Of a stretch of DNA of 64,000 bases, positions 2,930 to 62,000 are shown piece by piece. Under the pieces are notes generated by a model, which made no database searches, was not told the origin of the DNA, and worked only from the letters and a program-made list of their open reading frames with translations. The DNA comes from Macrostomum hystrix. Lineage: Eukaryota; Animalia; Platyhelminthes. The position numbers were made by a program, and so were the translations under genes. How positions within the stretch are numbered: position 1 is the first letter of the stretch; each line of letters begins with the position of its first letter. The DNA lies in assembly GCA_950097015.1 (NCBI GenBank), contig CATNEN010000012.1, positions 1,612,001-1,676,000 of the forward strand. Direction: 5' to 3'.

Positions 2930-5385
2930 GTGAAAATTCGCCAGCCTCCATAGCTGACCTGTCCACTGCCGATCAGACGGGTAACGACTCAGTGGCTCGG
3001 ACGGCCCTGTACATCTTTACGGACAGAGCTTTCTTAAATAAGGTTCGCATGCTTGATTTAATATGATACTTGTTACACAATCAGATTATCGCAGGTGTAT
3101 ATTGTATTTTAGTTTAAATTGTGGGTAAACTTTGTTATAGTTGTTATTGATTGCTATTCCGTGCCCCTATTTGCAGATCAAGGCACACCGCACCGAGGGC
3201 GTCGAGCTTTTGGCTGTGGACGATTATCCGACGCGCCAGTCGGTGCGGGAGGCCTTCAAGAAGCTGATGCGCGTCTGTCTGCCCAGCAAGCAGCTGCTGG
3301 CTGGTGAAGAGAAGCGGCACAGATTCCTGCGCAAATTTGACGAGTCTGGCTGGCTGGCTCTTGTGCGCCGCTCTCTGCGTCTGGCCGGAGCTGTGGCTGA
3401 TCTGGTGGACTGCGGCGCCTGCTCGGTGCTGGTGGCGCTGGAGGATGGCTGTGACGCTACGGCTAGCGTCCTGGCGCTGGCCCAGCTGATGCTGGACCCG
3501 CACTACCGATCCATGTCCGGCTTCAGGGCTCTGGTAGAGAAGGAGTGGCTGTTGTTCGGCCATCCGTTTGACAGCCGGTTAGTTTTCTGATTGGCTGATT
3601 GTTTTACATCTCTGTGATTGGCTGATTTTCTAGCATCTCTGTGATTGGCTGATTGTCTAGCATCTCTGTGATTGGCTGATTGTCTAGCATCTCCGTGATT
3701 GGCTGATTGTCTAGCATCTCTGTGATTACCTAAGAAGATGAAAGCCTATGCTTGTCCCTAGGGGGTAAATGGCACAGTGAGAGTTTCAAACTGTGGAACA
3801 ATAAAAAGCATCAGGACAGCTGTACACCTGTGTGAGTGTGTGCCTGCGTACGGTATGCTTGGCAGTGGAATGTGAAGAATTTCCTGCGGTTCTACTGTCA
3901 CTAAATAATGTGCCAGTACCCACAGCCCTCCCGCAAATATTATTACGATACGATTATGATGATATTAAAATTAAAAGGCTTGGCTCATCCCTGATTGGCT
4001 GACAAGATCCAATCTTATGAATGTTCCCGATTCTAGAAATCGCGATCGCTCCACTTATTATTTGTCATTCTTCTGCCCTCTGTAGCTTCGGCCGGCTGAA
4101 GGGCGCCGACAATCAGCACTTCTCGCCCCATTTCCTCCTGTTCGTCGACTGCGTCCACCAGCTGCTGCACCAGTTCCCTCTGTCCTTCGAGTTCAACCAG
4201 TTCTTCCTGGCCACCGTAGCCTATCACTCTGTGTCCTGCCGATTTCGTAATTTCCTCGGCAACTGCGAAGCTGACCGCCTGGCCTGGATGCCGCCGACGG
4301 GAACTGCCGGCGCCGAGGACGACGACTTTTGGCAGTTCATCGGCGAGCAGAACAGCCAGGCGGCGCATTTCTTCAACCTGGCATTCAGCCCGGCTCTGGC
4401 AGGCCGGCGGGAATTCCGCGTCCTCCGACCCGCCACCGTCTCCGCGCTGCTGCAGCCATGGCGCTTCCTCACCTCCGAGGACGCCGCCTACGGGCCGCCC
4501 TACGATGCAGATCTGTGCGCAGCTGAGCGGCGCCAGCAGGCCGAGGTGGCCGCCACGGCCTGCTCCGGCATCGCTGACGCGCCCGACTCTGCCGAGTCCG
4601 CCGAAGCCGAGCTCGGCTACAACTACAGCTGGGCCCTGGGGGCCGCCTGCCCCCTGGCCAGGGGACTCGAGGAGCTGGCCTCTATACAGGTCTGCCTGCC
4701 CGCCTGCCTGCCTGCCTGCCTGCCTGCCTGTGTGTCTGTCTGTCTGTCTGTCTCTCAGATGTTTAACTTTGCATTCAATTTGAACCCTAGACTCGTCAGT
4801 ATAGATGTAAGCTATCATTTGTCTATTTCGCCCCGCAATATCAGGGCTCCTCGTGTCACGAGCTTTGGCACAGCCTGCTGCGAGACACCTACTTTGGCGG
4901 CTCCGCTGTGAGCGTCGAACCGTCGTTGCTATGCCAACGGGAGGCCGTTAAACAGATGCACATTAACGCCACGCGTGAGCTCCTTTGCCAGCAGCAGCAC
5001 CAGCAGCAGCAGGATCTGCAACAGCAGGAGCAGCAGGCTGCCCAGCAGCAGCAGCAGCAGCAGGATGGTCTGTTTACCAGGCAGCACAAGTTTGTGAGCC
5101 ACCTGTTCCCAAGCCCGGTGCACTGCCAGTACTGCGACCACCTGGTGTGGATGATCTGCGGCGGCGGTGTCAAGGTGATTTGCTGAGCTTGCCAAGCTAT
5201 CTGATTTCTCGTCTTCTCCGTTTTATCCATTCAAAATGAGATCAATTTCCTACTCAAGGACGGCGGAAAATCCGGCGCTGGCCGACGAGTCGCCACTGGC
5301 GGCCTTCGCTGCGTCGCCTGCGGCTTCGCCTGCCACGAGAAGTGCGCCGCTCACGTGCGGGCCGACTGCACACCGGCTAGTAATA

Positions 5386-21790: not shown

Positions 21791-22004
21791 CTTTTGTGAC
21801 TCATGTTAAATTTTACCTGCTATCATAGCTGCGGCTGCAGCGATGTTTCTAGCTGAGATTCTCGCTACGATTCTTTCTGGCACTCCAGATACAATTCTAT
21901 CTGCGATTCCTTCTGCAATTCTAGCCATGATTCCTGCACAGACACAAGCTGCGATACTTTGCGGCGTGCTTTACGCAGTGAATTTGATGCATGTTATTAC
22001 ACAT

Positions 22005-24297
22005 AACACTTGAGTACATATGCGTGTGAGTATACATACACTTGAGTACATGTCCGTGTGAGTATACATACACTTGAGTACATATGCGTGTGAGTATACA
22101 TACACTGTACATATGCGTGTGAGTATACATACACTGTACATATGCGTGTGAGTATACATACACTGTACATATGAGTGTGAGTATACATACACTGTACATA
22201 TGCGTGTGAGTATACATACACTGTACATATGAGTGTGAGTATACATACACTGTACATATGCGTGTGAGTATACATACACTGTACATATGCGTGTGAGTCT
22301 ATACATACACTGTACATATGAGTGTGAGTATACATACACTGTACATATGCGTGTGAGTATACATACACTGTACATATGCGTGTGAGTATACATACACTGT
22401 ACATATGAGTGTGAGTATACATACACTGTACATATGCGTGTGAGTATACATACACTGTACATATGCGTGTGAGTCTATACATACACTGTACATATGAGTG
22501 TGAGTATACATACACTGTACATATGCGTGTGAGTATACATACACTGTACATATGCGTGTGAGTATACATACACTGTACATATGCGTGTGAGTATACATAC
22601 ACTGTACATATGCGTGTGAGTCTATACATACACTGTACATATGAGTGTGAGTATACATACACTGTACATATGCGTGTGAGTATACATACACTGTACATAT
22701 GCGTGTGAGTATACATACACTGTACATATGCGTGTGAGTATACAAACACTTGAGTACATGTCCGTGTGAGTATACATACACTTGAGTACATATGCGTGTG
22801 AGTATACATACACTGTACATATGCGTGTGAGTATACATACACTGTACATATGCGTGTGAGTATACATACACTGTACATATGAGTGTGAGGATACATACAC
22901 TGTACATATGCGTGTGAGTATACATACACTGTACATATGCGTGTGAGTCTATACATACACTGTACATATGAGTGTGAGTATACATACACTGTACATATGC
23001 GTGTGAGTATACATACACTACATATGCGTGTGAGTATACATACACTGTACATATGAGTGTGAGTATACATACACTGTACATATGCGTGTGAGTATACATA
23101 CACTGTACATATGAGTGTGAGTATACATACACTGTACATATGCGTGTGAGTATACATACACTGTACATATGCGTGTGAGTCTATACATACACTGTACATA
23201 TGAGTGTGAGTATACATACACTGTACATATGCGTGTGAGTATACATACACTGTACATATGCGTGTGAGTATACATACACTGTACATATGCGTGTGAGTAT
23301 ACATACACTGTACATATGCGTGTGAGTCTATACATACACTGTACATATGAGTGTGAGTATACATACACTGTACATATGCGTGTGAGTATACATACACTGT
23401 ACATATGCGTGTGAGTATACATACACTGTACATATGCGTGTGAGTATACATACACTGTACATATGCGTGTGAGTATACATACACTGTACATATGCGTGTG
23501 AGTATACATACACTTGAGTACATATGCGTGTGAGTATACATACACTTGAGTACATATGCGTGTGAGTATACATACACTGTACATATGAGTGTGAGTATAC
23601 ATACACTGTACATATGAGTGTGAGTATACATACACTTGAGTACATATGAGTGTGAGTATACATACACTGTACATATGAGTGTGAGTATACATACACTTGA
23701 GTACATATGAGTGTGAGTATACATACACTTGAGTACATATGAGTGTGAGTATACATACACTGTACATATGAGTGTGAGTATACATACACTGTACATATGC
23801 GTGTGAGTATACATACACTGTACATATGAGTGTGAGTATACATACACTGTACATATGAGTGTGAGTATACATACACTGTACATATGAGTGTGAGTATACA
23901 TACACTGTACATATGAGTGTGAGTATACATACACTTGAGTACATATGAGTGTGAGTATACATACACTGTACATATGCGTGTGAGTATACATACACTGTAC
24001 ATATGAGTGTGAGTATACATACACTGTACATATGCGTGTGAGTATACATACACTTGAGTACATGTCCGTGTGAGTATACATACACTGTACATATGAGTGT
24101 GAGTATACATACACTTGAGTACATGTCCGTGTGAGTATACATACACTTGAGTACATGTGCGTGTGAGTATACATACACTTGAGTACATGTGCGTGTGAGT
24201 ATACATACACTTGAGTACATGTGCGTGTGAGTATACATACACTTGAGTACATGTGCGTGTGAGTATACATACACTTGAGTACATGTGCGTGTGAGTA
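22005..24297. repeat. 29/32-bp minisatellite, 2.3 kb
   Basis: Unit GTGTGAGTATACATACACTGTACATATG(C/A), with a +3 variant ..CACTTGAGTAC.. Confidence 0.97.
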
Positions 24298-24591
24298 GAA
24301 AGCTGCAAAAAGCGTGGCAGCTAGCAAAGTGGAAAAGTTTGTCTCAACTCAAAGCAAAAATTACGCCTGCTTGACAAACGGGCGATAAAAAGCATCGAGT
24401 GTTTAACAAAGCCGACTTGCTCATGGAATTTCAATGATTGCACTTCCTGGCTGACTGGCGCCAGGGCCAGCTCTGCAGACAATGCAATGTGAGAAAGTTG
24501 AAGGAAAAACAATCTTTCTTGATTAATGACGTAATTCACGGCATGACTATAATCTAATTATTCATTCATCTACGAGTCTTTCTTTGCGGGA

Positions 24592-27500
24592 TTTGATCTG
24601 ATTATGACCCAATCTATTAGATCTGATTATGACCGAATCTATTAGATCTGATTATGACCGAATCTATTAGATCTGATTATGACCGAATCTATTAGATCTG
24701 ATTATGACCGAATCTATTAGATCCGATTATGACTGAATCTATTAGATCTGATTATGACCGAATCTATTAGATCTGATTATGACTGAATCTATTAGATCTG
24801 ATTATGACCCAATCTATTAGATCTGATTATGACTGAATCTATTAGATCTGATTATGACCCAATCTATTAGATCTGATTATGACTGAATCTATTAGATCTG
24901 ATTATGACCGAATCTATTAGATCTGATTATGACTGAATCTATTAGATCTGATTATGACCCAATCTATTAGATCTGATTATGACCCAATCTATTAGATGTG
25001 ATTATGACTGAATCTATTAGATCTGATTATGACCGAATCTATTAGATCTGATTATGACCCAATCTATTAGATCTGATTATGACCGAATCTATTAGATCTG
25101 ATTATGACCGAATCTATTAGATGTGATTATGACCGAATCTATTAGATCTGATTATGACCCAATCTATTAGATCTGATTATGACCCAATCTATTAGATCTG
25201 ATTATGACCGAATCTATTAGATCTGATTATGACCGAATCTATTAGATCTGATTATGACCCAATCTATTAGATCTGATTATGACCCAATCTATTAGATCTG
25301 ATTATGACCCAATCTATTAGATCTGATTATGACCGAATCTATTAGATCTGATTATGACTGAATCTATTAGATCTGATTATGACCCAATCTATTAGATCTG
25401 ATTATGACCCAATCTATTAGATCTGATTATGACCCAATCTATTAGATCTGATTATGACCGAATCTATTAGATCTGATTATGACCGAATCTATTAGATGTG
25501 ATTATGACCGAATCTATTAGATCTGATTATGACCCAATCTATTAGATCTGATTATGACCCAATCTATTAGATCTGATTATGACCCAATCTATTAGATCTG
25601 ATTATGACCGAATCTATTAGATCTGATTATGACTGAATCTATTAGATCTGATTATGACTGAATCTATTAGATCTGATTATGACCCAATCTATTAGATCTG
25701 ATTATGACCGAATCTATTAGATCTGATTATGACTGAATCTATTAGATCTGATTATGACCGATTCTATTAGATGTGATTATGAAAGAATCTATTAGATGTG
25801 ATTATGACCGAATCTATTAGATCTGATTATGACCGAATCTATTAGATCTGATTATGACCGAATCTATTTGATCTGATTATGACTGAATCTACTAGATCTG
25901 ATTATGACCGAATCTATTAGATGTGATTATGACCGAATCTATTAGATCTGATTATGACCCAATCTATTAGATCTGATTATGACCCAATCTATTAGATCTG
26001 ATTATGACCGAATCTATTAGATCTGATTATGACCGAATCTATTAGATCTGATTATGACCGAATCTATTAGATCTGATTATGACCGAATCTATTAGATCTG
26101 ATTATGACCGAATCAATTAGATCTGATTATGACCGAATCTATTAGATCTGATTATGACCCAATCTATTAGATCTGATTATGACCCAATCTATTAGATCTG
26201 ATTATGACCGAATCTATTAGATCTGATTATGACCGAATCTATTAGATCTGATTATGACCCAATCTATTAGATCTGATTATGACCCAATCTATTAGATCTG
26301 ATTATGACCCAATCTATTAGATCTGATTATGACCCAATCTATTAGATCTGATTATGACCGAATCTATTAGATCTGATTATGACTGAATCTATTAGATCTG
26401 ATTATGACTGAATCTATTAGATCTGATTATGACCCAATCTATTAGATCTGATTATGACCCAATCTATTAGATCTGATTATGACCCAATCTATTAGATCTG
26501 ATTATGACCGAATCTATTAGATCTGATTATGACCGAATCTATTAGATGTGATTATGACCGAATCTATTAGATCTGATTATGACCCAATCTATTAGATCTG
26601 ATTATGACCCAATCTATTAGATCTGATTATGACCCAATCTATTAGATCTGATTATGACCGAATCTATTAGATCTGATTATGACTGAATCTATTAGATCTG
26701 ATTATGACTGAATCTATTAGATCTGATTATGACCCAATCTATTAGATCTGATTATGACCGAATCTATTAGATCTGATTATGACTGAATCTATTAGATCTG
26801 ATTATGACCGAATCTATTAGATGTGATTATGAAAGAATCTATTAGATGTGATTATGACCGAATCTATTAGATCTGATTATGACCGAATCTATTAGATCTG
26901 ATTATGACCGAATCTATTTGATCTGATTATGACTGAATCTACTAGATCTGATTATGACCGAATCTATTAGATGTGATTATGACCGAATCTATTAGATCTG
27001 ATTATGACCCAATCTATTAGATCTGATTATGACCCAATCTATTAGATCTGATTATGACCGAATCTATTAGATCTGATTATGACCGAATCTATTAGATCTG
27101 ATTATGACCGAATCTATTAGATCTGATTATGACCGAATCTATTAGATCTGATTATGACCGAATCAATTAGATCTGATTATGACCGAATCTTTTAGATCTG
27201 ATTATGACCGAATCTATTAGATCTGATTATGACCGAATCTATTAGATCTGATTATGACCGAATCTATTAGATCTGATTATGACCGAATCTATTAGATCTG
27301 ATTATGACCCAATCTATTAGATCTGATTATGACCGAATCTATTAGATCTGATTATGACCCAATCTATTAGATCTGATTATGACCGACTCTATTTGATTTG
27401 ATTATGACCGAATCTATTAGATCTGATTATGACCGAATCTATTAGATCTGATTATGACCGAATCTACTAGATCTGATTATGACCGAATCTATTAGATCTG

Positions 27501-28182
27501 ATTATGACCGAATCAATTAGATCTGATTATGACCGAATCTATTAGATCTGATTATGACCGAATCTATTAGATCTGATTATGACCGAATCTATTAGATCTG
27601 ATTAGGACCGAATCTATTAGATCTGATTATGACCGAATCTATTAGATCTGATTATGACCGAATCTATTAGATCTGATTATGACCGAATCTATTAGATCTG
27701 ATTATGACCCAATCTATTAGATCTGATTATGACCGAATCTATTAGATCTGATTATGACCCAATCTATTAGATCTGATTATGACCGACTCTATTTGATTTG
27801 ATTATGACCGAATCTATTAGATCTGATTATGACCGAATCTATTAGATCTGATTATGACCGAATCTATTAGATCTGATTATGATCGAATCTATTAGATCTG
27901 ATTATGACCGACTCTATTTGATCTGATTATGACCGACTCTATTTGATCTAATTATGACTGAATCAATTAGATCTGATTATGACCGAATCAATTCGATCTG
28001 ATTATGACCGAATCTATTAGATCCGATTATGACCGAATCAATTAGATCTGATTATGACCGAATCAATTAGATCAGATTATGACCGAATCTATTTGATCTG
28101 ATTATGACCGAATCTATTAGATCTGATTATGACCGAATCTATTAGATCTGATTATGACTGAATCTACTAGATGTGACTATAA
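24592..28182. repeat. 25-bp satellite, about 143 copies, with higher-order structure
   Basis: Unit AGATCTGATTATGAC(C/T)(G/C)AATCTATT. Confidence 0.98.
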
Positions 28183-28689
28183 TCACTTTGTTTAAATTAG
28201 CAGTGTATCGCTTCTAAACACCGGAATAAAAATCCTGAAACACTCAGGAAGTATGCGAAACCATACCTCTATATGGAAATGAGGTTCTTAAGTTGGAAAT
28301 TCTCTAAATTTCCCTCGAGCAAGAAGAAAATGTAACCGTTGAAATTGAAGTCCCGTGTTCCGTAGGCACAGGACCCGACGGGACACCCCAGTCTGGCTAT
28401 CAAGGAAGTTATTAATTTTTAATTGGCCAATTAGCGGCCACCGCTCGGCTGCACGGTCCAAGCCAAGAAATGCCTGCTTCAAATAAAAAGGAAGGACTCG
28501 ACTCTCCGGATCTCCTAAAAATCTGGGCATGGCAACTTTGAGTCAGCGGCTGGAATTCAAGAATTTGCCGAGTTTTTCGGTGGCTTTACAAACTGAAGGA
28601 GAGCAGGGCACCGCCATTGAGCTCGTAGATTTGAATCCAGCAGTGTTTGAGTTTTCTGGACTCCTATTCTTTGAGAATTTTCTAAATGG

Positions 28690-29560
28690 ATTGGGATTCT
28701 CTGAAGTGATAGGGATTCTCTGAAGTGATAGGGATTCTCTGAAGTGATAGGGATTCTCTGAAGTGATAGGGATTCTCTGAAGTGATAGGGATTCTCTGAA
28801 GTGATAGGGATTCTCTGAAGTGATAGGGATTTTCTGAAGTGATAGGCATTTTCGGGATGGGATCGGGATGGGATCGGGATTTTCGGGATGGGATCGGGAT
28901 TTTCGGGATGGGATCGGGATGGGATCGGGATTTTCGGGATGGGATCGGGATGGGATCGGGATTTTCGGGATGGGATCGGGATAGGATCGGGATTTTCGGG
29001 ATGGGATCGGGATTTTCAGGATGGGATCGGGATTTTCGGGATAGGATCGGGATTTTCGGGATGGGATCGGGATGGGATCGGGATTTTCTGAAACGATAGG
29101 GATTTTCTGAATTGATAGGGATTTTCTGAAGTTATAGGCACTTTCGGGGTGGGATTGGGATTTTCTGATATGATTGGGATTTTCGGGATGGGATCGGGAT
29201 TTTAGGGATTGAATTGGGATTTTCGGGATGGGATCGGGATTTTCGTGATGGGATCGGGATTTTCTGAAATGATTGGGACTTTCTGAAGTGATAGGGATTT
29301 TCTGAAACGATAGGGATTTTCTGAATTGATTGGGATTTTCTGAAGTGATAGGGATTTTCGTGATGGGATTGGGATTTTTCGAAGTGATAGGGATTTTTTG
29401 AAGTGATAGAGATTTTCGGGATGAAATTGGGACTTTTGGGATGGGATTAGGATTTTCGGGATGGGATTCGTACTTTCGGGTTGGGATTGGGATTTTCTGA
29501 AGTGTTTGGGATTTTGGGGTTGGCATTGGGATTTTCGGCATGGGATTGGGACGGTATAGG
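28690..29560. repeat. 19-bp minisatellite followed by GGGAT-rich degenerate repeats
   Basis: ATTCTCTGAAGTGATAGGG units, then (GGGAT, GGGATC, GGGATTTTC)n. Confidence 0.93.
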
Positions 29561-30165
29561 ATTTGATTGATTAAACTGAGATTCGGATTTCGCTGGTGGG
29601 TTTGTAAATTTCGGGTTGAGATCAGGATAGTCCGGGTCGGGATGGTGAGATTTCGAAGGGGATTAGGATAGTCCGGGATGGGAATAAATTTATCGGCACT
29701 GGGTAAAGATAGTCCATATGAGACTTCGATAGAAAAATTATTGACAATTCACAATGGGTTTGTGTAGCACAATATCGCAGTCAGTTAGACACAGTTTTCC
29801 CGGATTTGTTTCACTAAAAATGTCATTATCAATCAGAAGACAAAAGACCAGTTCGTTTTGGTATTTAAAAGGCCATTCTAGACAGCCATGTCATTGTCAT
29901 CTGCCTACTGCTGGCTGAGGCTTTCAAAATAGGCCCATAATATTTATTTTTTCTTTTCTGATATGCTGATCTGATAAATTCATTGAAAGCAAAATACCAA
30001 CCTCAAGCAGTCCCGTTGCTTAACCGTCAAAAATTATTTTATTAAATTCAAATTTGTTTGTCTCCGAGCGACAAATCGGCTTTGTGGCTGGCGCGAGTTT
30101 GAATTGTCAATAAAAAATTTTCAAACATTTGAAACTGTCTGAGTCTGTTCAACATTTCGCAAAGA

Positions 30166-30198
<33 letters not shown>

Positions 30199-30229
30199 TG
30201 CGGGTCTTTGAACAGTAAAGACAGGTCTG

Positions 30230-30762
30230 TTAGCCGATGGGGCAGGCCCTGTAATCCTTCAGGCGACACCGCTTACTCAAGCGCTGAAAGTGCTGAAGAA
30301 TGTCAAGGTCGTCATCGACCAGGGGCTCTTCAAATATCGGCCATTGCTCCTGGGGCGGCTGCGGCGGCGGCTGCGGCTGCGGTTCGGCCAAGCCAATGGA
30401 TGCTGCGGCAAGCTGCGGCATCGCGTCGTCGTCTTCGTAGTCTGAAAAGGTATGGACGTTCTGGATATGATTCAAACGGTTTGTCGTGTTTTGGAGGATA
30501 CTAGATGGGATTAGGATAGTCAGGATGGGATTGGGATATTTGGATGGGATTGGGATGTTTGCATGGTATTGGGGAAGGTCACAATTTATGCACATCAGGG
30601 CCAACCCCGAGGCAGGTCACCTGTGTGAGTGTATGCCTGCACAAACATCACTCTGCATGCTTGTGCTCAGGACTTACCGTAGTTGAAGGGCCAGCTGGGT
30701 GGAAAGGCGGCAGTCAGTGACACATACGCAGCTACCAGTACCAGAGCAGTGAGCCTCACCAT
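30230..30762 (-). CDS. Putative 98-aa secreted prepropeptide (neuropeptide-precursor-like): signal peptide, acidic/Pro-rich pro-region, KR, then CRLKDYRACPIG-stop
   Basis: Exon 1 30762-30678 (ATG..TAC G|gtaagt) and exon 2 30441-30230 (ccttttcag|AC TAC..GGC TAA) join in phase (85+212 nt). Product MVRLTALVLVAAYVSLTAA/FPPSWPFNYDYEDDDAMPQ..DILQHFQRLSKR/CRLKDYRACPIG. AATAAA on the minus strand at 30038-30043. Confidence 0.75.
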
Positions 30763-31344
30763 TGCCAATTGCTCAATCGAGTATTGGCTTGAGTAGAGCC
30801 GCGGATGAGAATATACGGTCCGCTTTTAATTTCCCCTGACGGTGGTGATAAGAATTGAGTGGCCGGTTGGAATCGCTTTGGGGGTTGTTAAATGCGGCTG
30901 GTTCTGCAATAGTCGCAAACAGGTCGCATCTGATTGGCTAGGAGAATTCACTGCTCAGCTGCCAGTGGTTGAGCAGTTTGTCTCGAGTGACGGGTGCTCA
31001 TAGAAGATGCTCGATTGTACTTTTGTGTAATTAAAAAATCTTTTCGATCTCTGATAAGTGCTCTCGGTTGTCATTCGTTGCAAGGTAAAGGCGAATAAGC
31101 CTTTACCTTGATCCTCAGAACCTCATTTTTTACAGATTGTCTTCATATCGATTGCAAAGTAGCTCATGCTTGAAATTTTCAGTGAGACACTGACACACTG
31201 AGAACCACATAGACACTTTTTTCTATTATGAGAAAATTGGTCAAGGAAAATGTTTTATTGGTCACCGCTAAGCAAATAAAAGAGTGTATTCATTTTATTC
31301 ATTAAGTTATCACTAAAAATGGAAAATTTTATTACATTTTTTGG

Positions 31345-32712
31345 CTGTAGAACTGCTGCTGCTGACTGTGGAACTGCTGCTGCTGAATCTGGAACTGTTG
31401 CTGGCTGTGGAACTGCTGCTGACTGTGGTACTGCTGCTGGCTGTGGAACTGCTGCTGGCTGTGGAACTGCTGCTGGCTGTGGAACTGCTGCTGGATGTGG
31501 AACTGCTGCTGCTGAATCTGGAACTGTTGCTGGCTGTGGAACTGCTGCTGGCTGTGGAACTGCTGCTGGCTGTGGAACTGCTGCTGGCTGTGGAACTGCT
31601 GCTGGCTGTGGAACTGCTGCTGGCTGTGGAACTGCTGCTGGATGTGGAACTGTTGCTGGCTGTGGAACTGCTGCTGCTGAATCTGGAACTGTTGCTGGCT
31701 GTGGAACTGCTGCTGACTGTGGAACTGCTGCTGACTGTGGAACTGCTGCTGGCTGTGGAACTGCTGCTGACTGTGGAACTGCTGCTGACTGTGGAACTGC
31801 TGCTGGCTGTGGAACTGCTGCTGACTGTGGAACTGTTGCTGGCTGTGGAACTGCTGCTGCTGAATCTGGAACTGTTGCTGGCTGTGGAACTGCTGCTGAC
31901 TGTGGAACTGCTGCTGACTGTGGAACTGCTGCTGGCTGTGGAACTGCTGCTGACTGTGGAACTGCTGCTGACTGTGGAACTGCTGCTGGCTGTGGAACTG
32001 CTGCTGACTGTGGAACTGCTGCTGGCTGTGGAACTGCTGCTGTGTGGAACTGCTGCTGTGTGAAACTGTTGCTGGCTGTGGAACTGCTGCTGACTGTGGA
32101 ACTGCTGCTGGCTGTGGAACTGCTGCTGTGTGGAACTGCTGCTGTGTGGAACTGTTGCTGGCTGTGGAACTGCTGCTGTGTGGAACTGCTGCTGTGTGAA
32201 ACTGCTGCTGGATGTGGAAGTGCTGCTGAATCTGGAACTGCTGCTGGCTGTGGAACTGCTGCTGTGTGGAACTGCTGCTGGCTGTGGAACTGCTGCTGTG
32301 TGGAACTGCTGCTGGCTGTGGAACTGCTGCTGTGTGGAACTGCTGCTGGCTGTGGAACTGCTGCTGTGTGGAACTGCTGCTGGCTGTGGAACTGCCGCTG
32401 CTGACTGTGGAACTGCTGCTGTGTGGAACTGCTGCTGGCTGTGGAACTGCTGCTGCTGACTGCGGAACTGCTGCTGCTGGCTGTGGAACTGCTGCTGTGT
32501 GGAACTGCTGCTGTGTAGAACTGCTGCTGGCAGTGGAACTGCTGCTTGCTGTGGAACTGCGTCTGCTGACTGTGGAACTGCTGCTGCTGGCTGTGGAACT
32601 GCTGCTGTGTGGAACTGCTGCTGTGTAGAACTGCTGCTGGCAGTGGAACTGCTGCTTGCTGTGGAACTGCGTCTGCTGACTGTGGAACTGCTGCTGCTGG
32701 CTGTGGAAGTGC
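31345..32712. repeat. 18-bp minisatellite with CTG-length variants
   Basis: Unit GGCTGTGGAACTGCTGCT. Confidence 0.95.
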
Positions 32713-48555: not shown

Positions 48556-49920
48556 ATGCAAGAATTGGCGATGGCGGACCCCGAAGGCAAAATCTGCAGG
48601 TACTTTAACACTCTAGGCGGGTGCTGGTACGGCCAGCAGTGCAAGTTTCTGCACATCCCCAACCAGAAACCGCCGTGCAAGTTTTTCTTTTCCACCTCCG
48701 GCTGCCGCTTTGGAGATGCGTGCCACTTCTCTCACGATCGTATGTCGCTAAAGTCCGTGGAGAACAGCGCGCCAGAGTCCGAGGAGCTGCCAAGCCAAGA
48801 CCTAAAGGCCGCGGTCAGCACCGGTGCTTCTGGCGAGGGTTACCAATCTGGAACTAACAACAATAGCATGTTCCAAACTGTTCAACAGTTAGAAGCGGTC
48901 GATGCCGATGCAGTTGACAACAGTGTCATCTACTGCACCACATGCCGCAAGATGCTCCACCGTCAGGACAATGAGAGCTACTACAACCTTCTGCGCGACC
49001 ACTACATGGAGTGCTTCTTTGAGAAGGATGTAGATCACATTAGGAATGTGCGTGTTCGCGCCTCCATAGAATTCGGCGCGCTCTATTCGTGCAAGGCCTG
49101 CAACTTGGTATTTGAGAAGCCCTGGTCACTCTTCCAGCACTGCACCGACAAGGCCAACGGTAAAGCCATTAAATCGACCCGATTCGAGCGCAAGGTGCAC
49201 AACGAATGGTTGCAGGAAGTCGCGGGCTCCATGGCGGCGTACGACCTAGGTCTGTTCCCGCCGAATCAAGTTCGCGACAGTCTGCGCGAAAACATTCTAC
49301 CACCTGCTTTGGAAGAGGAAATCGAGTCAGCTTCCAACGCACTGAACATGTGCGTGTTGCTCAACTACATGCTGAACGGACTTGGCATGTCGCAGGGAAT
49401 GATGCCAAACGGTAGCAGTGTCGGTGCTGTCTCTGGTGTCGGCGGTGGCGTCGGTGGCGGCATGGCTATTCAGAGGTATAATGGCCGGTCGGCTAGCCGG
49501 TCCGCGGGGGCAAGCCGCGGAGGAGGACCTCGTCGTCGCTTCATCGGTAACTCCCAAGATCGAGCGGCTGCTGCAGCGGCTGCAGCTTCGGCTACGGCTG
49601 CGGCAGTGGCAGCGGTGGTAACGGCGCCAGTCAAATCGAATGCTACGGCTGATTCTCCCCAGGATAGTGAAACTTTGGACACAAAGAGCTCGTCAACACC
49701 ATCGATGGTGGACAAGAAGCCGGACCCGGCATGCGGCGATGTGGAGGTTCTACCGACATCGCCAGATCAGAGCAGCGGAAACACATACGGATTCAGCAAG
49801 GAGGACGTCAACGAGCTTCGAACGCATGGGATTAATCCGTGGGACCCGGAGGCCCAGACGGCTCTGGCTGCGATTCATGGTGAATTTGACTACTTGTTGA
49901 GCCAGAATAATTCTGAGTGA
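48556..49920 (+). CDS. Intronless 454-aa protein with two N-terminal CCCH zinc fingers, further Cys/His clusters and a low-complexity Gly/Ala region
   Basis: Single ORF from ATG to TGA. Motifs CRYFNTLGGCWYGQQCKFLH and CKFFFSTSGCRFGDACHFSH (C-x8-C-x5-C-x3-H), plus YCTTC..H..C and CKAC..LFQHC. Confidence 0.85.
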   Translation: MQELAMADPEGKICRYFNTLGGCWYGQQCKFLHIPNQKPPCKFFFSTSGCRFGDACHFSHDRMSLKSVENSAPESEELPSQDLKAAVSTGASGEGYQSGTNNNSMFQTVQQLEAVDADAVDNSVIYCTTCRKMLHRQDNESYYNLLRDHYMECFFEKDVDHIRNVRVRASIEFGALYSCKACNLVFEKPWSLFQHCTDKANGKAIKSTRFERKVHNEWLQEVAGSMAAYDLGLFPPNQVRDSLRENILPPALEEEIESASNALNMCVLLNYMLNGLGMSQGMMPNGSSVGAVSGVGGGVGGGMAIQRYNGRSASRSAGASRGGGPRRRFIGNSQDRAAAAAAAASATAAAVAAVVTAPVKSNATADSPQDSETLDTKSSSTPSMVDKKPDPACGDVEVLPTSPDQSSGNTYGFSKEDVNELRTHGINPWDPEAQTALAAIHGEFDYLLSQNNSE

Positions 49921-59000: not shown

Positions 59001-62000
59001 ATGGCATCTTCAACTGAGAAAAGTGATAAGACTGAGGCAGACAATATGAAATACATATTGGTGACAGGTGGAGTTATCAGTGGTATTGGCAAAGGCATTA
59101 TTTCGTCATCTCTAGGCACTCTGCTCAAAGCCTGTGGTTACCGGGTCACATCTATAAAGATTGATCCTTACATAAACATTGATGCTGGTACTTTTTCTCC
59201 ATATGAGCATGGTAAGTCTCAGCTTCAGCATTATTAAGCAAACCTATTTTAAGTGTACAAGTAGTCAGTGGACCTGAAAACGTGAATACATCTTTTATCT
59301 ACCCTGTAGTTAGTGCTAAAATCTGCAATACCTAGCTGCCTGTAGTGGGCTGGCAAGGATTAATAATTGCAATATTGAGTTTTTATTTGCTTTCACAAAC
59401 CCATTCAGGTGAAGTTTATGTCCTTGATGACGGGGCTGAAGTTGACCTTGATCTAGGCAACTATGAGCGCTACTTGGATGTGACCCTGCACAGGGACAAC
59501 AATATTACTACAGGCAAGATTTATCAACAGGTTATAAACAGGGAGAGGCGCGGCGATTATCTTGGCCGGACGGTGCAGGTGAGTTCATTGTTTACCTGAA
59601 ACAAGAATTTTATTAGTTGCAAGATACTCCAATAAGTCAAAAGTTATTCAATTATAAAGGTAATTATCAATTCAAAAAGACTCAATGATCTTTGATTCAG
59701 GTCATTGAATTTATTGCGATGTATCAGTATATGACTGATTTGGAAATTGAGTTTGCTAGTTTGAGTTAATGAATCTTGTAGCAATCACTTCGAATTGGTT
59801 ATCTCTTTAAACTTATGACCTAAAGGTCGGGAGATCAAATCGCAGCCCAATGAATTTTTTGTTCTTGATTGAACCAGACACTAAATAATTCCATAGAACT
59901 TTCATTCACCCAGCTGTCAAATGAATACTAGCATTTTCTGGATTATTAAATTTAAGCGGGTTGTAGTCCAAAGACTGAACATCTGTACGCAGCCTTTGGA
60001 AGCGCCACGCCACTGGCTCCATCCGGCCTAACTAAGCTAGTTTTGGATGCTGTGCTATCAATCAGTTTATTATACCATGTTTTAAGCTAAAACCAAAAGA
60101 TTTAGGAATGCATTACGTTCTAAAATTATTCCCGTTATTTTCTGATGCTCTATAAGGGATAAGCGCTGTTCGCAACCAGGAGCTGAACACGCCTGAGCTC
60201 GATTTCGCAGCGAGGCCACATTTTTTTGGGGCGCAGCCGCGGAGAGAAGGCTTGGTGGCTTGCCGTGCAATTTATGACTTTTTAAGGCCAACATATAAGG
60301 CGCCGTGAAAGTGTACACTGCCTGACGATGAGAAAGTCAGGGCAGATGTACACAACTGTGTGTGTGCTCAGGAGTCAGCGAAATGGGCAGAACTGCCTCC
60401 TCGCTGGCAGCGGGTCTACTGTCACCAAATGATGTGCCATTGCCAGCAGCCCTTCTGAAATTATTATTATTATTATTAGGTGGTGCCGCACATCACAGAC
60501 GCCGTGCAGGAGTGGGTAAAGCGCGTTGCCCAGATCCCAGTTGACAGCACGGACAAGACGCCTCAGATCTGCATCATTGAGCTGGGCGGCGTCATCGGCG
60601 ACATCGAGTCGATGCCGTTCGTTGAAGCATTCCGCCAATTCCAGTTTAACGTTGGCGTCAACCGGTTCGCCTGCATTCACGTCTCCCTGGTACCGGAGCC
60701 GCGCACGACAGGCGAGCAGAAGACTAAACCGACTCAGATGTCTGTGCGTGAGCTGCGTGCTCTGGGCCTCAGTCCGCACCTGCTGGTCTGCCGCTGTTCA
60801 ACTCCGTTGAGCCAGTCGGCTGCCGACAAGCTAGCCATGTTCTGCCACGTGGCGCCGGCCCAGGTAGCAAAATTTATTTCACAATTCTTGTTAACAGATT
60901 CGAAATTATATAAATCCTCTAAAATTCTCTCAGGTAATAAATGTGCCAGACGCAAACAGCCTCTACAAAGTGCCCATCATGCTGATGGACCAGGGCGTGC
61001 ACCAGTTTCTGTTGCGCCACTTTCAACTGGACTGCGGCGCCCCGACTCAGGTCACCTTGGAAGACTGGCAGGAGCTGGCGAAACGGTGAGGCTTGTGCGA
61101 TTTCTTATATCCCGATCCTTCAGGGTCACATGATGTATCCCAATCCTTCAGGGTCACATGATGTATCCCAATCCTTCAGGTCACATGATGTATCCCAATC
61201 CTTCAGGATCACATGATGTATCCCAATCCTTCAGGTTCACATGATGTATCCCGATCCTTCAGGATCACATGATGTATCCCAATCCTTCAGGTCACATGAT
61301 GTATCCCGATCCTTCAGGTCACATGATGTATCCCAATCCTTCAGGATCACATGATGTATCCCAATCCTTCAGGTCACATGATGTATCCCGATCCTTCAGG
61401 ATCACATGATGTATCCCGATCCTTCAGGTCACATGATGTATCCCGATCCTTCAGGTCACATGATGTATCCCGATCCTTCAGGTTCACATGATGTATCCCA
61501 ATCCTTCAGGGTCACATGATGTATCCCAATCCTTCAGGTCACATGATGTATCCCGATCGTTCAGGATCATATGATGTATCCCGATCCTTCAGGATCACAT
61601 GATGTATCCCGATCGTTCAGGATCATATGATGTATCCCGATCCTTCAGGTTCACATGATGTATCCCGATCGTTCAGGATCATATGATGTATCCCGATCCT
61701 TCAGGTTCACATGATGTATCCCAATCCTTCAGGTCACATGATGTATCCCAATCCTTCAGGTCACATGATGTATCCCAATCCTTCAGGTTCACATGATGTA
61801 TCCCAATCCTTCAGGTCACATGATGTATCCCAATCCTTCAGGATCACATGATGTATCCCAATCCTTCAGGTTCACATGATGTATATTAATCCTTCAGGTC
61901 ACATGATGTATCCCAATCCTTCAGGTCACATGATGTATCCCAATCCTTCAGGTCACATGATGTATCCCAATCCTTCAGGATCACATGATGTATCCCAATC

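Follow-up and report, generated by a model that had tools for sequence, protein, structure and literature searches.

A two-exon Macrostomum gene encoding a candidate precursor of a cyclic amidated peptide

A short gene on the minus strand of the window, the 64,000-nucleotide stretch of Macrostomum hystrix DNA that was analysed, is spliced from two exons and encodes a 98-aa product. That this flatworm gene is real, is expressed and encodes a secreted precursor can be stated with high confidence. The precursor is probably processed to a cyclic amidated 11-mer, CRLKDYRACPI-NH2, as predicted from its sequence. The 98-aa secretory prepropeptide would most likely give a neuropeptide or peptide hormone acting on a receptor, a reading held with middling confidence. 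It is an orphan prepropeptide and not a novel type of system.

The spliced transcript and its reading frame

The 98-aa ORF is complete once exon 1 (CDS 30762-30678) and exon 2 (30441-30230) of the minus strand are spliced in phase. The parts of the gene are:

30763-30847, minus strand: 5'UTR, to the limit of the RNA contigs, without an AUG and with an in-frame TAA at 30828-30826
30678-30762, minus strand: coding part of exon 1, 28 codons and 1 base, with the donor G/GTAAGT from 30677
30706-30762, minus strand: predicted signal peptide MVRLTALVLVAAYVSLTAA, by the (-3,-1) rule
30442-30677, minus strand: intron of 236 nt, GT..AG, phase 1, seen in the RNA contigs
30275-30441, minus strand: exon 2 share of the acidic Pro/Gln-rich spacer, from the translation
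30269-30274, minus strand: Lys85-Arg86, the sole dibasic site and predicted prohormone-convertase site
30233-30268, minus strand: CRLKDYRACPIG, the predicted mature peptide region including the Gly
30230-30232, minus strand: stop TAA, immediately 3' of the Gly codon
29871-30229, minus strand: 3'UTR spanned by the RNA contigs, with (CAG)10 and two AATAAA
30271-30276, minus strand: donor-like GTAAGC overlapping the Ser-Lys-Arg codons, used by 0 contigs

Translation starts at the ATG 30762-30760, from which the 28 codons of exon 1 read MVRLTALVLVAAYVSLTAAFPPSWPFNY. Exon 1 closes at 30678 with the donor TACG/GTAAGT, and the acceptor TTTTCAG/ fixes the start of exon 2 at 30441, the sequence leading in being CCTTTTCAG/. 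The join is in phase 1: the G at 30678 and the AC at 30441-30440 together make Asp29, keeping the frame, which continues through exon 2 to GGC TAA at 30235-30230 (stop 30232-30230).

RNA contigs of four public runs, from two studies and under three organism labels, were aligned to positions 29600-31300. Each of the four runs yielded a contig with the joint 30441/30678, in which 236 nt are skipped with CT..AC borders on the plus strand, that is, GT..AG on the minus strand. The junction at which the original prediction could be checked against RNA is thus present in the contigs of 4/4 runs, and the predicted two-exon minus-strand model, its coordinates and its product sequence are correct. A 439-nt contig corresponds to 30847-30678 joined to 30441-30206 and includes the entire coding sequence; a second contig, found in two runs, covers 30158-29871. 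Within 29600-31300, RNA depth is zero in the intron, above ~30850 and below ~29870. Because both the intron and the flanks are at zero depth, the contigs represent a discrete spliced transcript and not genomic DNA.

The resulting mRNA model is 741 nt long. Its longest ORF has 98 codons, the runner-up having 35. This ORF opens at the first AUG of the message, downstream of an in-frame TAA in the 5'UTR, and is therefore complete. The AATAAA noticed earlier downstream of the stop is present at 30043-30038, but the contigs read through it to ~29871. In two runs they stop at 29871/29872, 72 nt beyond the AATAAA at 29948-29943.

It had also been suggested that a donor-like GTAAGC overlapping the Ser-Lys-Arg codons might allow alternative splicing to replace the mature peptide. 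The hexamer is there, at 30276-30271, but its use as a donor found no support: 0 contigs of the four runs splice at it, contigs being apt to drop rare forms, and the only joint found is 30441/30678.

Several features of the RNA data are recorded here as observations. The two contigs are separated by the (CAG)10 run at 30167-30196; this run is perfect, lies ~34 nt past the stop, interrupts every RNA contig and could be length-polymorphic. Word depth was 62.6 for a study P2 run comprising 44 million letters and 2-10 for study P1 runs comprising 114-202 million; depth per letter is ~80-fold higher in study P2 than in P1, depth being a poor measure of expression. In one run (X1) 6 of the 253 positions of the 3'UTR contig, 29872-30124, disagree with the window, 29964, 29989 and 30019 among them, and 0 differences occur in the 211 nt of the contig that spans the 5'UTR and the coding exons. 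The differences could represent an allele or a duplicate with a conserved coding part, or contigs of different haplotypes. Since the coding parts covered are identical to the window, the RNA contigs under three organism labels add no evolutionary depth.

Precursor layout and predicted processing

The layout read from the DNA in the original prediction is present in the product: i) a signal peptide, by rule; ii) an acidic spacer; iii) a single KR; iv) a peptide with two Cys; and v) a Gly followed by the stop. The segment MVRLTALVLVAAYVSLTAA/FP, residues 1-19, has one Arg in its n-region, a 13-residue hydrophobic core and Thr and Ala at -3 and -1. The GRAVY of MVRLTALVLVAAYVSLTAA is 1.84, and its Thr-Ala-Ala end fits the (-3,-1) rule, by which residues 1-19 are a predicted signal peptide. 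The spacer, residues 20-84, is Pro/Gln-rich, with 13 Asp+Glu against 1 basic residue (an Arg) and a net charge of ~-12. KR at residues 85-86 is the only dibasic site in the product. The last segment, residues 87-98, reads CRLKDYRACPIG; its 3 Lys+Arg outnumber a single Asp, and the stop comes directly after Gly98. The whole product contains only 2 Cys, both of them in this last segment. The final 14 residues of the ORF hold the KR, both Cys and the terminal Gly.

Cleavage by prohormone convertases and amidation by peptidylglycine alpha-amidating monooxygenase follow established rules, and these underlie the processing predicted here. The 19-residue signal peptide would carry the protein into the secretory pathway, where a prohormone convertase would cleave after Lys85-Arg86. 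The two Cys would form a 9-residue ring (C-x7-C), and peptidylglycine alpha-amidating monooxygenase would act directly on the last Gly to give CRLKDYRACPI-NH2; as Gly is the terminal residue, the amidating enzyme would need no carboxypeptidase step. A small cationic cyclic amide would in this way be freed from a strongly acidic propiece. With a Cys1-Cys9 disulfide the predicted mature peptide has a monoisotopic mass of 1333.675 Da, and its GRAVY is -0.38.

How often such an end might arise by chance was estimated with a motif of two basic residues, Cys, 3-10 residues, Cys, 1-3 residues, Gly and stop, scanned in six frames. The window contains 1 occurrence. With local composition preserved, at least one also turned up in 13% of simulated windows, and on its own the C-terminal motif is therefore weak as evidence. 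What gives it weight is the combination: it closes the one long ORF of an expressed mRNA that is spliced and has a hydrophobic, signal-like start.

The database searches for relatives of the precursor covered its exon 2 part, downstream of the 28 aa of exon 1 that hold the predicted signal peptide. Pfam gave no domain in the exon 2 product. A word-indexed search of 5.8 billion proteins returned no candidate at E<=10, and exhaustive phmmer against 1.84 billion representatives gave 0 matches at E<=0.001. The best score in the ESM Atlas was 0.45, which is meaningless, and no usable relative was obtained there. Within the window, neither tblastn nor the motif scan found a paralogue. In the literature searched, the only hits for peptides ending in CPI-amide were vasopressin/oxytocin reviews that list octopressin; neither CP[ILVFM]G nor KRC occurs in the planarian prohormone supplements; and no list of Macrostomum neuropeptides was found. 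The earlier admission that the peptide could not be assigned to a known family is thus borne out by Pfam, both protein searches, the ESM Atlas and the literature alike. Searches of this kind often miss precursors that are short and evolve fast. By the search tools used, the precursor is an orphan, and it is not proven unique; on the sequence, the best reading is that the gene belongs to a lineage-restricted family.

In the favoured reading, CRLKDYRACPI-NH2 would act via a receptor as a neuropeptide or hormone. Against signalling stands the lack of a relative in any search, and hence of any sign of cross-species conservation. That the gene founds an undescribed flatworm "CPI-amide" family of cyclic neuropeptides, which could be a much-diverged counterpart of somatostatin/allatostatin-C with its own receptor, is a rather doubtful extension of this reading.

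The catalogue of flatworm signalling peptides is still incomplete. The precursor supplies a concrete ligand candidate that is cheaply synthesised and has a predicted mass for peptidomics. The candidate can serve receptor de-orphanisation, RNAi and in situ work, in a host that is a model of regeneration and reproduction. By itself, the gene is one further orphan secreted peptide gene.

Other readings of the precursor

A signal peptide, an anionic propiece, a KR and a cationic amidated peptide would fit exocrine or host-defence peptides equally well. The product could be made by gland or epidermal cells, with the acidic propiece masking a cationic cyclic amide that is released externally, in the manner of frog skin; this is an unlikely but serious alternative. 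Its case begins with the charge pattern, since the frog-type precursor layout is found here (13 acidic residues against 1 basic in the spacer, 3 basic against 1 acidic in the peptide), a pattern that is common to neuropeptides as well. A second point is tigerinin-1R of frog skin, RVCSAIPLPICH-NH2, a 12-mer that is cationic, C-terminally amidated and closed by a C-x7-C ring. The predicted peptide shares with tigerinin-type peptides a positive charge, a length of 11-12 residues, the C-x7-C ring and amidation at the C-terminus. It differs in that tigerinin is the product of a vertebrate skin gland and has a hydrophobic, Pro/Ile-rich ring, compared with the charged ring RLKDYRA here; nothing points to common descent of the two. 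A gland product could also explain the high depth in study P2, as could a particular type of sample. However, the Macrostomum peptide is short, only moderately cationic and, at the GRAVY given above, not hydrophobic. Furthermore, defence peptides usually come in families that share prepro regions, but the precursor searches revealed no family: no propiece relative was found in the protein databases searched, and the gene is present as a single copy in the window, where no paralogue of a multigene prepro family was detected.

It is improbable that the product is a small secreted protein, e.g. a seminal-fluid or gland product, that works as a whole chain of 79 residues in which the KR and terminal Gly are incidental. 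An orphan, short, secreted product with low-complexity acidic sequence is consistent with such a protein, and so is the frequency with which the C-terminal motif arises by chance in simulated windows. Macrostomum expresses many orphan transcripts that are limited to the prostate. Against the whole-chain reading, the KR, a Cys pair nine residues apart and the very last Gly coincide within the final 14 residues.

In its build the gene resembles somatostatin/allatostatin-C precursors, a likeness of layout that does not establish membership. As in those precursors, a single bioactive peptide with one disulfide would be released from the C-terminal end by cleavage at a basic site. A very divergent precursor of this type, that is, a flatworm member of a bilaterian family and not a lineage-specific invention, would thus account for the ring-capable Cys pair and for a peptide taken from the C-terminal end after a dibasic site. 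Somatostatin/allatostatin-C-type peptides carry within the ring the core motif F-x-P (or F-x-A/V/L/I) or FWK (PMC8851493). The ring RLKDYRA has neither Phe nor Trp, and the motifs F-x-P, F-x-[AVLI] and FWK are all absent. Unlike the family examples, which have other ring sizes, the predicted peptide has a ring with seven internal residues (C-x7-C), and its end would be amidated. No search gave a sequence link to the family, and the authors of the comparison paper themselves caution that such likeness is easily convergent. Membership is therefore considered very unlikely.

The original prediction had also drawn attention to the octopus peptides cephalotocin, CYFRNCPIG-NH2, and octopressin, CFWTSCPIG-NH2, whose sequences it gave correctly; every peptide listed for their family has C-x4-C (PMC7181382). 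Vasopressin/oxytocin-type precursors are defined by a C-x4-C ring in a peptide that adjoins the signal peptide, and by a neurophysin domain at the C-terminus (PMC7181382). The predicted peptide would share with the two octopus peptides a disulfide ring followed by Cys-Pro-Ile and a C-terminal amide. It differs from them in its ring, in its C-terminal position in the precursor and in ending CPI-NH2 instead of CPIG-NH2. Three of the four features tested fail: i) the ring, C-RLKDYRA-C, has seven internal residues instead of four; ii) the peptide occupies residues 87-98 of 98 and does not directly follow the signal peptide; and iii) no neurophysin was found by Pfam, and the whole product has no Cys beyond the peptide's own pair. 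The fourth feature is the exocyclic Pro-x-Gly-amide tail. The precursor does end CPIG-stop with a single Gly, as the octopus peptides end CPIG, but family precursors keep this Gly in the mature peptide, and here it would be the amide donor, leaving a tail one residue shorter. Kobayashi and colleagues list four separate VP/vasotocin precursor entries in Macrostomum lignano; if the present genome is close to that of M. lignano, the VP role would thus already be filled by other genes. Descent from a vasopressin/oxytocin-type gene with loss of the neurophysin is hardly credible, and membership was rejected on the wrong ring size, the wrong precursor end and the missing neurophysin. A CPxG tail alone is no safe sign of vasopressin/oxytocin kinship.

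Surroundings of the gene in the window

The gene is flanked by minisatellite arrays at 27500-28180, 28677-29551 and 31342-32696, with units of 25 bp (x27), 19/20 bp (x~36-39) and 18 bp (x75), respectively. Within the intron, positions 30504-30573 hold 3.6 copies of a 19-bp repeat that resembles the unit of the downstream array. A further long tandem array, at 21997-24327, has minus-strand open frames of up to 776 codons that repeat ...YVYSHAYVQCMYTHTHMYSVCILT...; it looks like a satellite rather than a gene.

On the plus strand, 48556-49920 is an unbroken ORF of 454 codons with two CCCH zinc fingers. A homology search with it gave matches in Platyhelminthes alone, in keeping with a flatworm genome, the best being fluke, tapeworm and planarian proteins at 32-57% identity; no Macrostomum protein is among the matches listed, and the exact product is absent from the record. 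Two exon-sized ORFs on the same strand are ordinary neighbours unrelated to the peptide gene: 4021-4911 encodes the end of a myotubularin-like phosphatase domain, and 60480-61133 the N-terminal domain of a CTP synthase.
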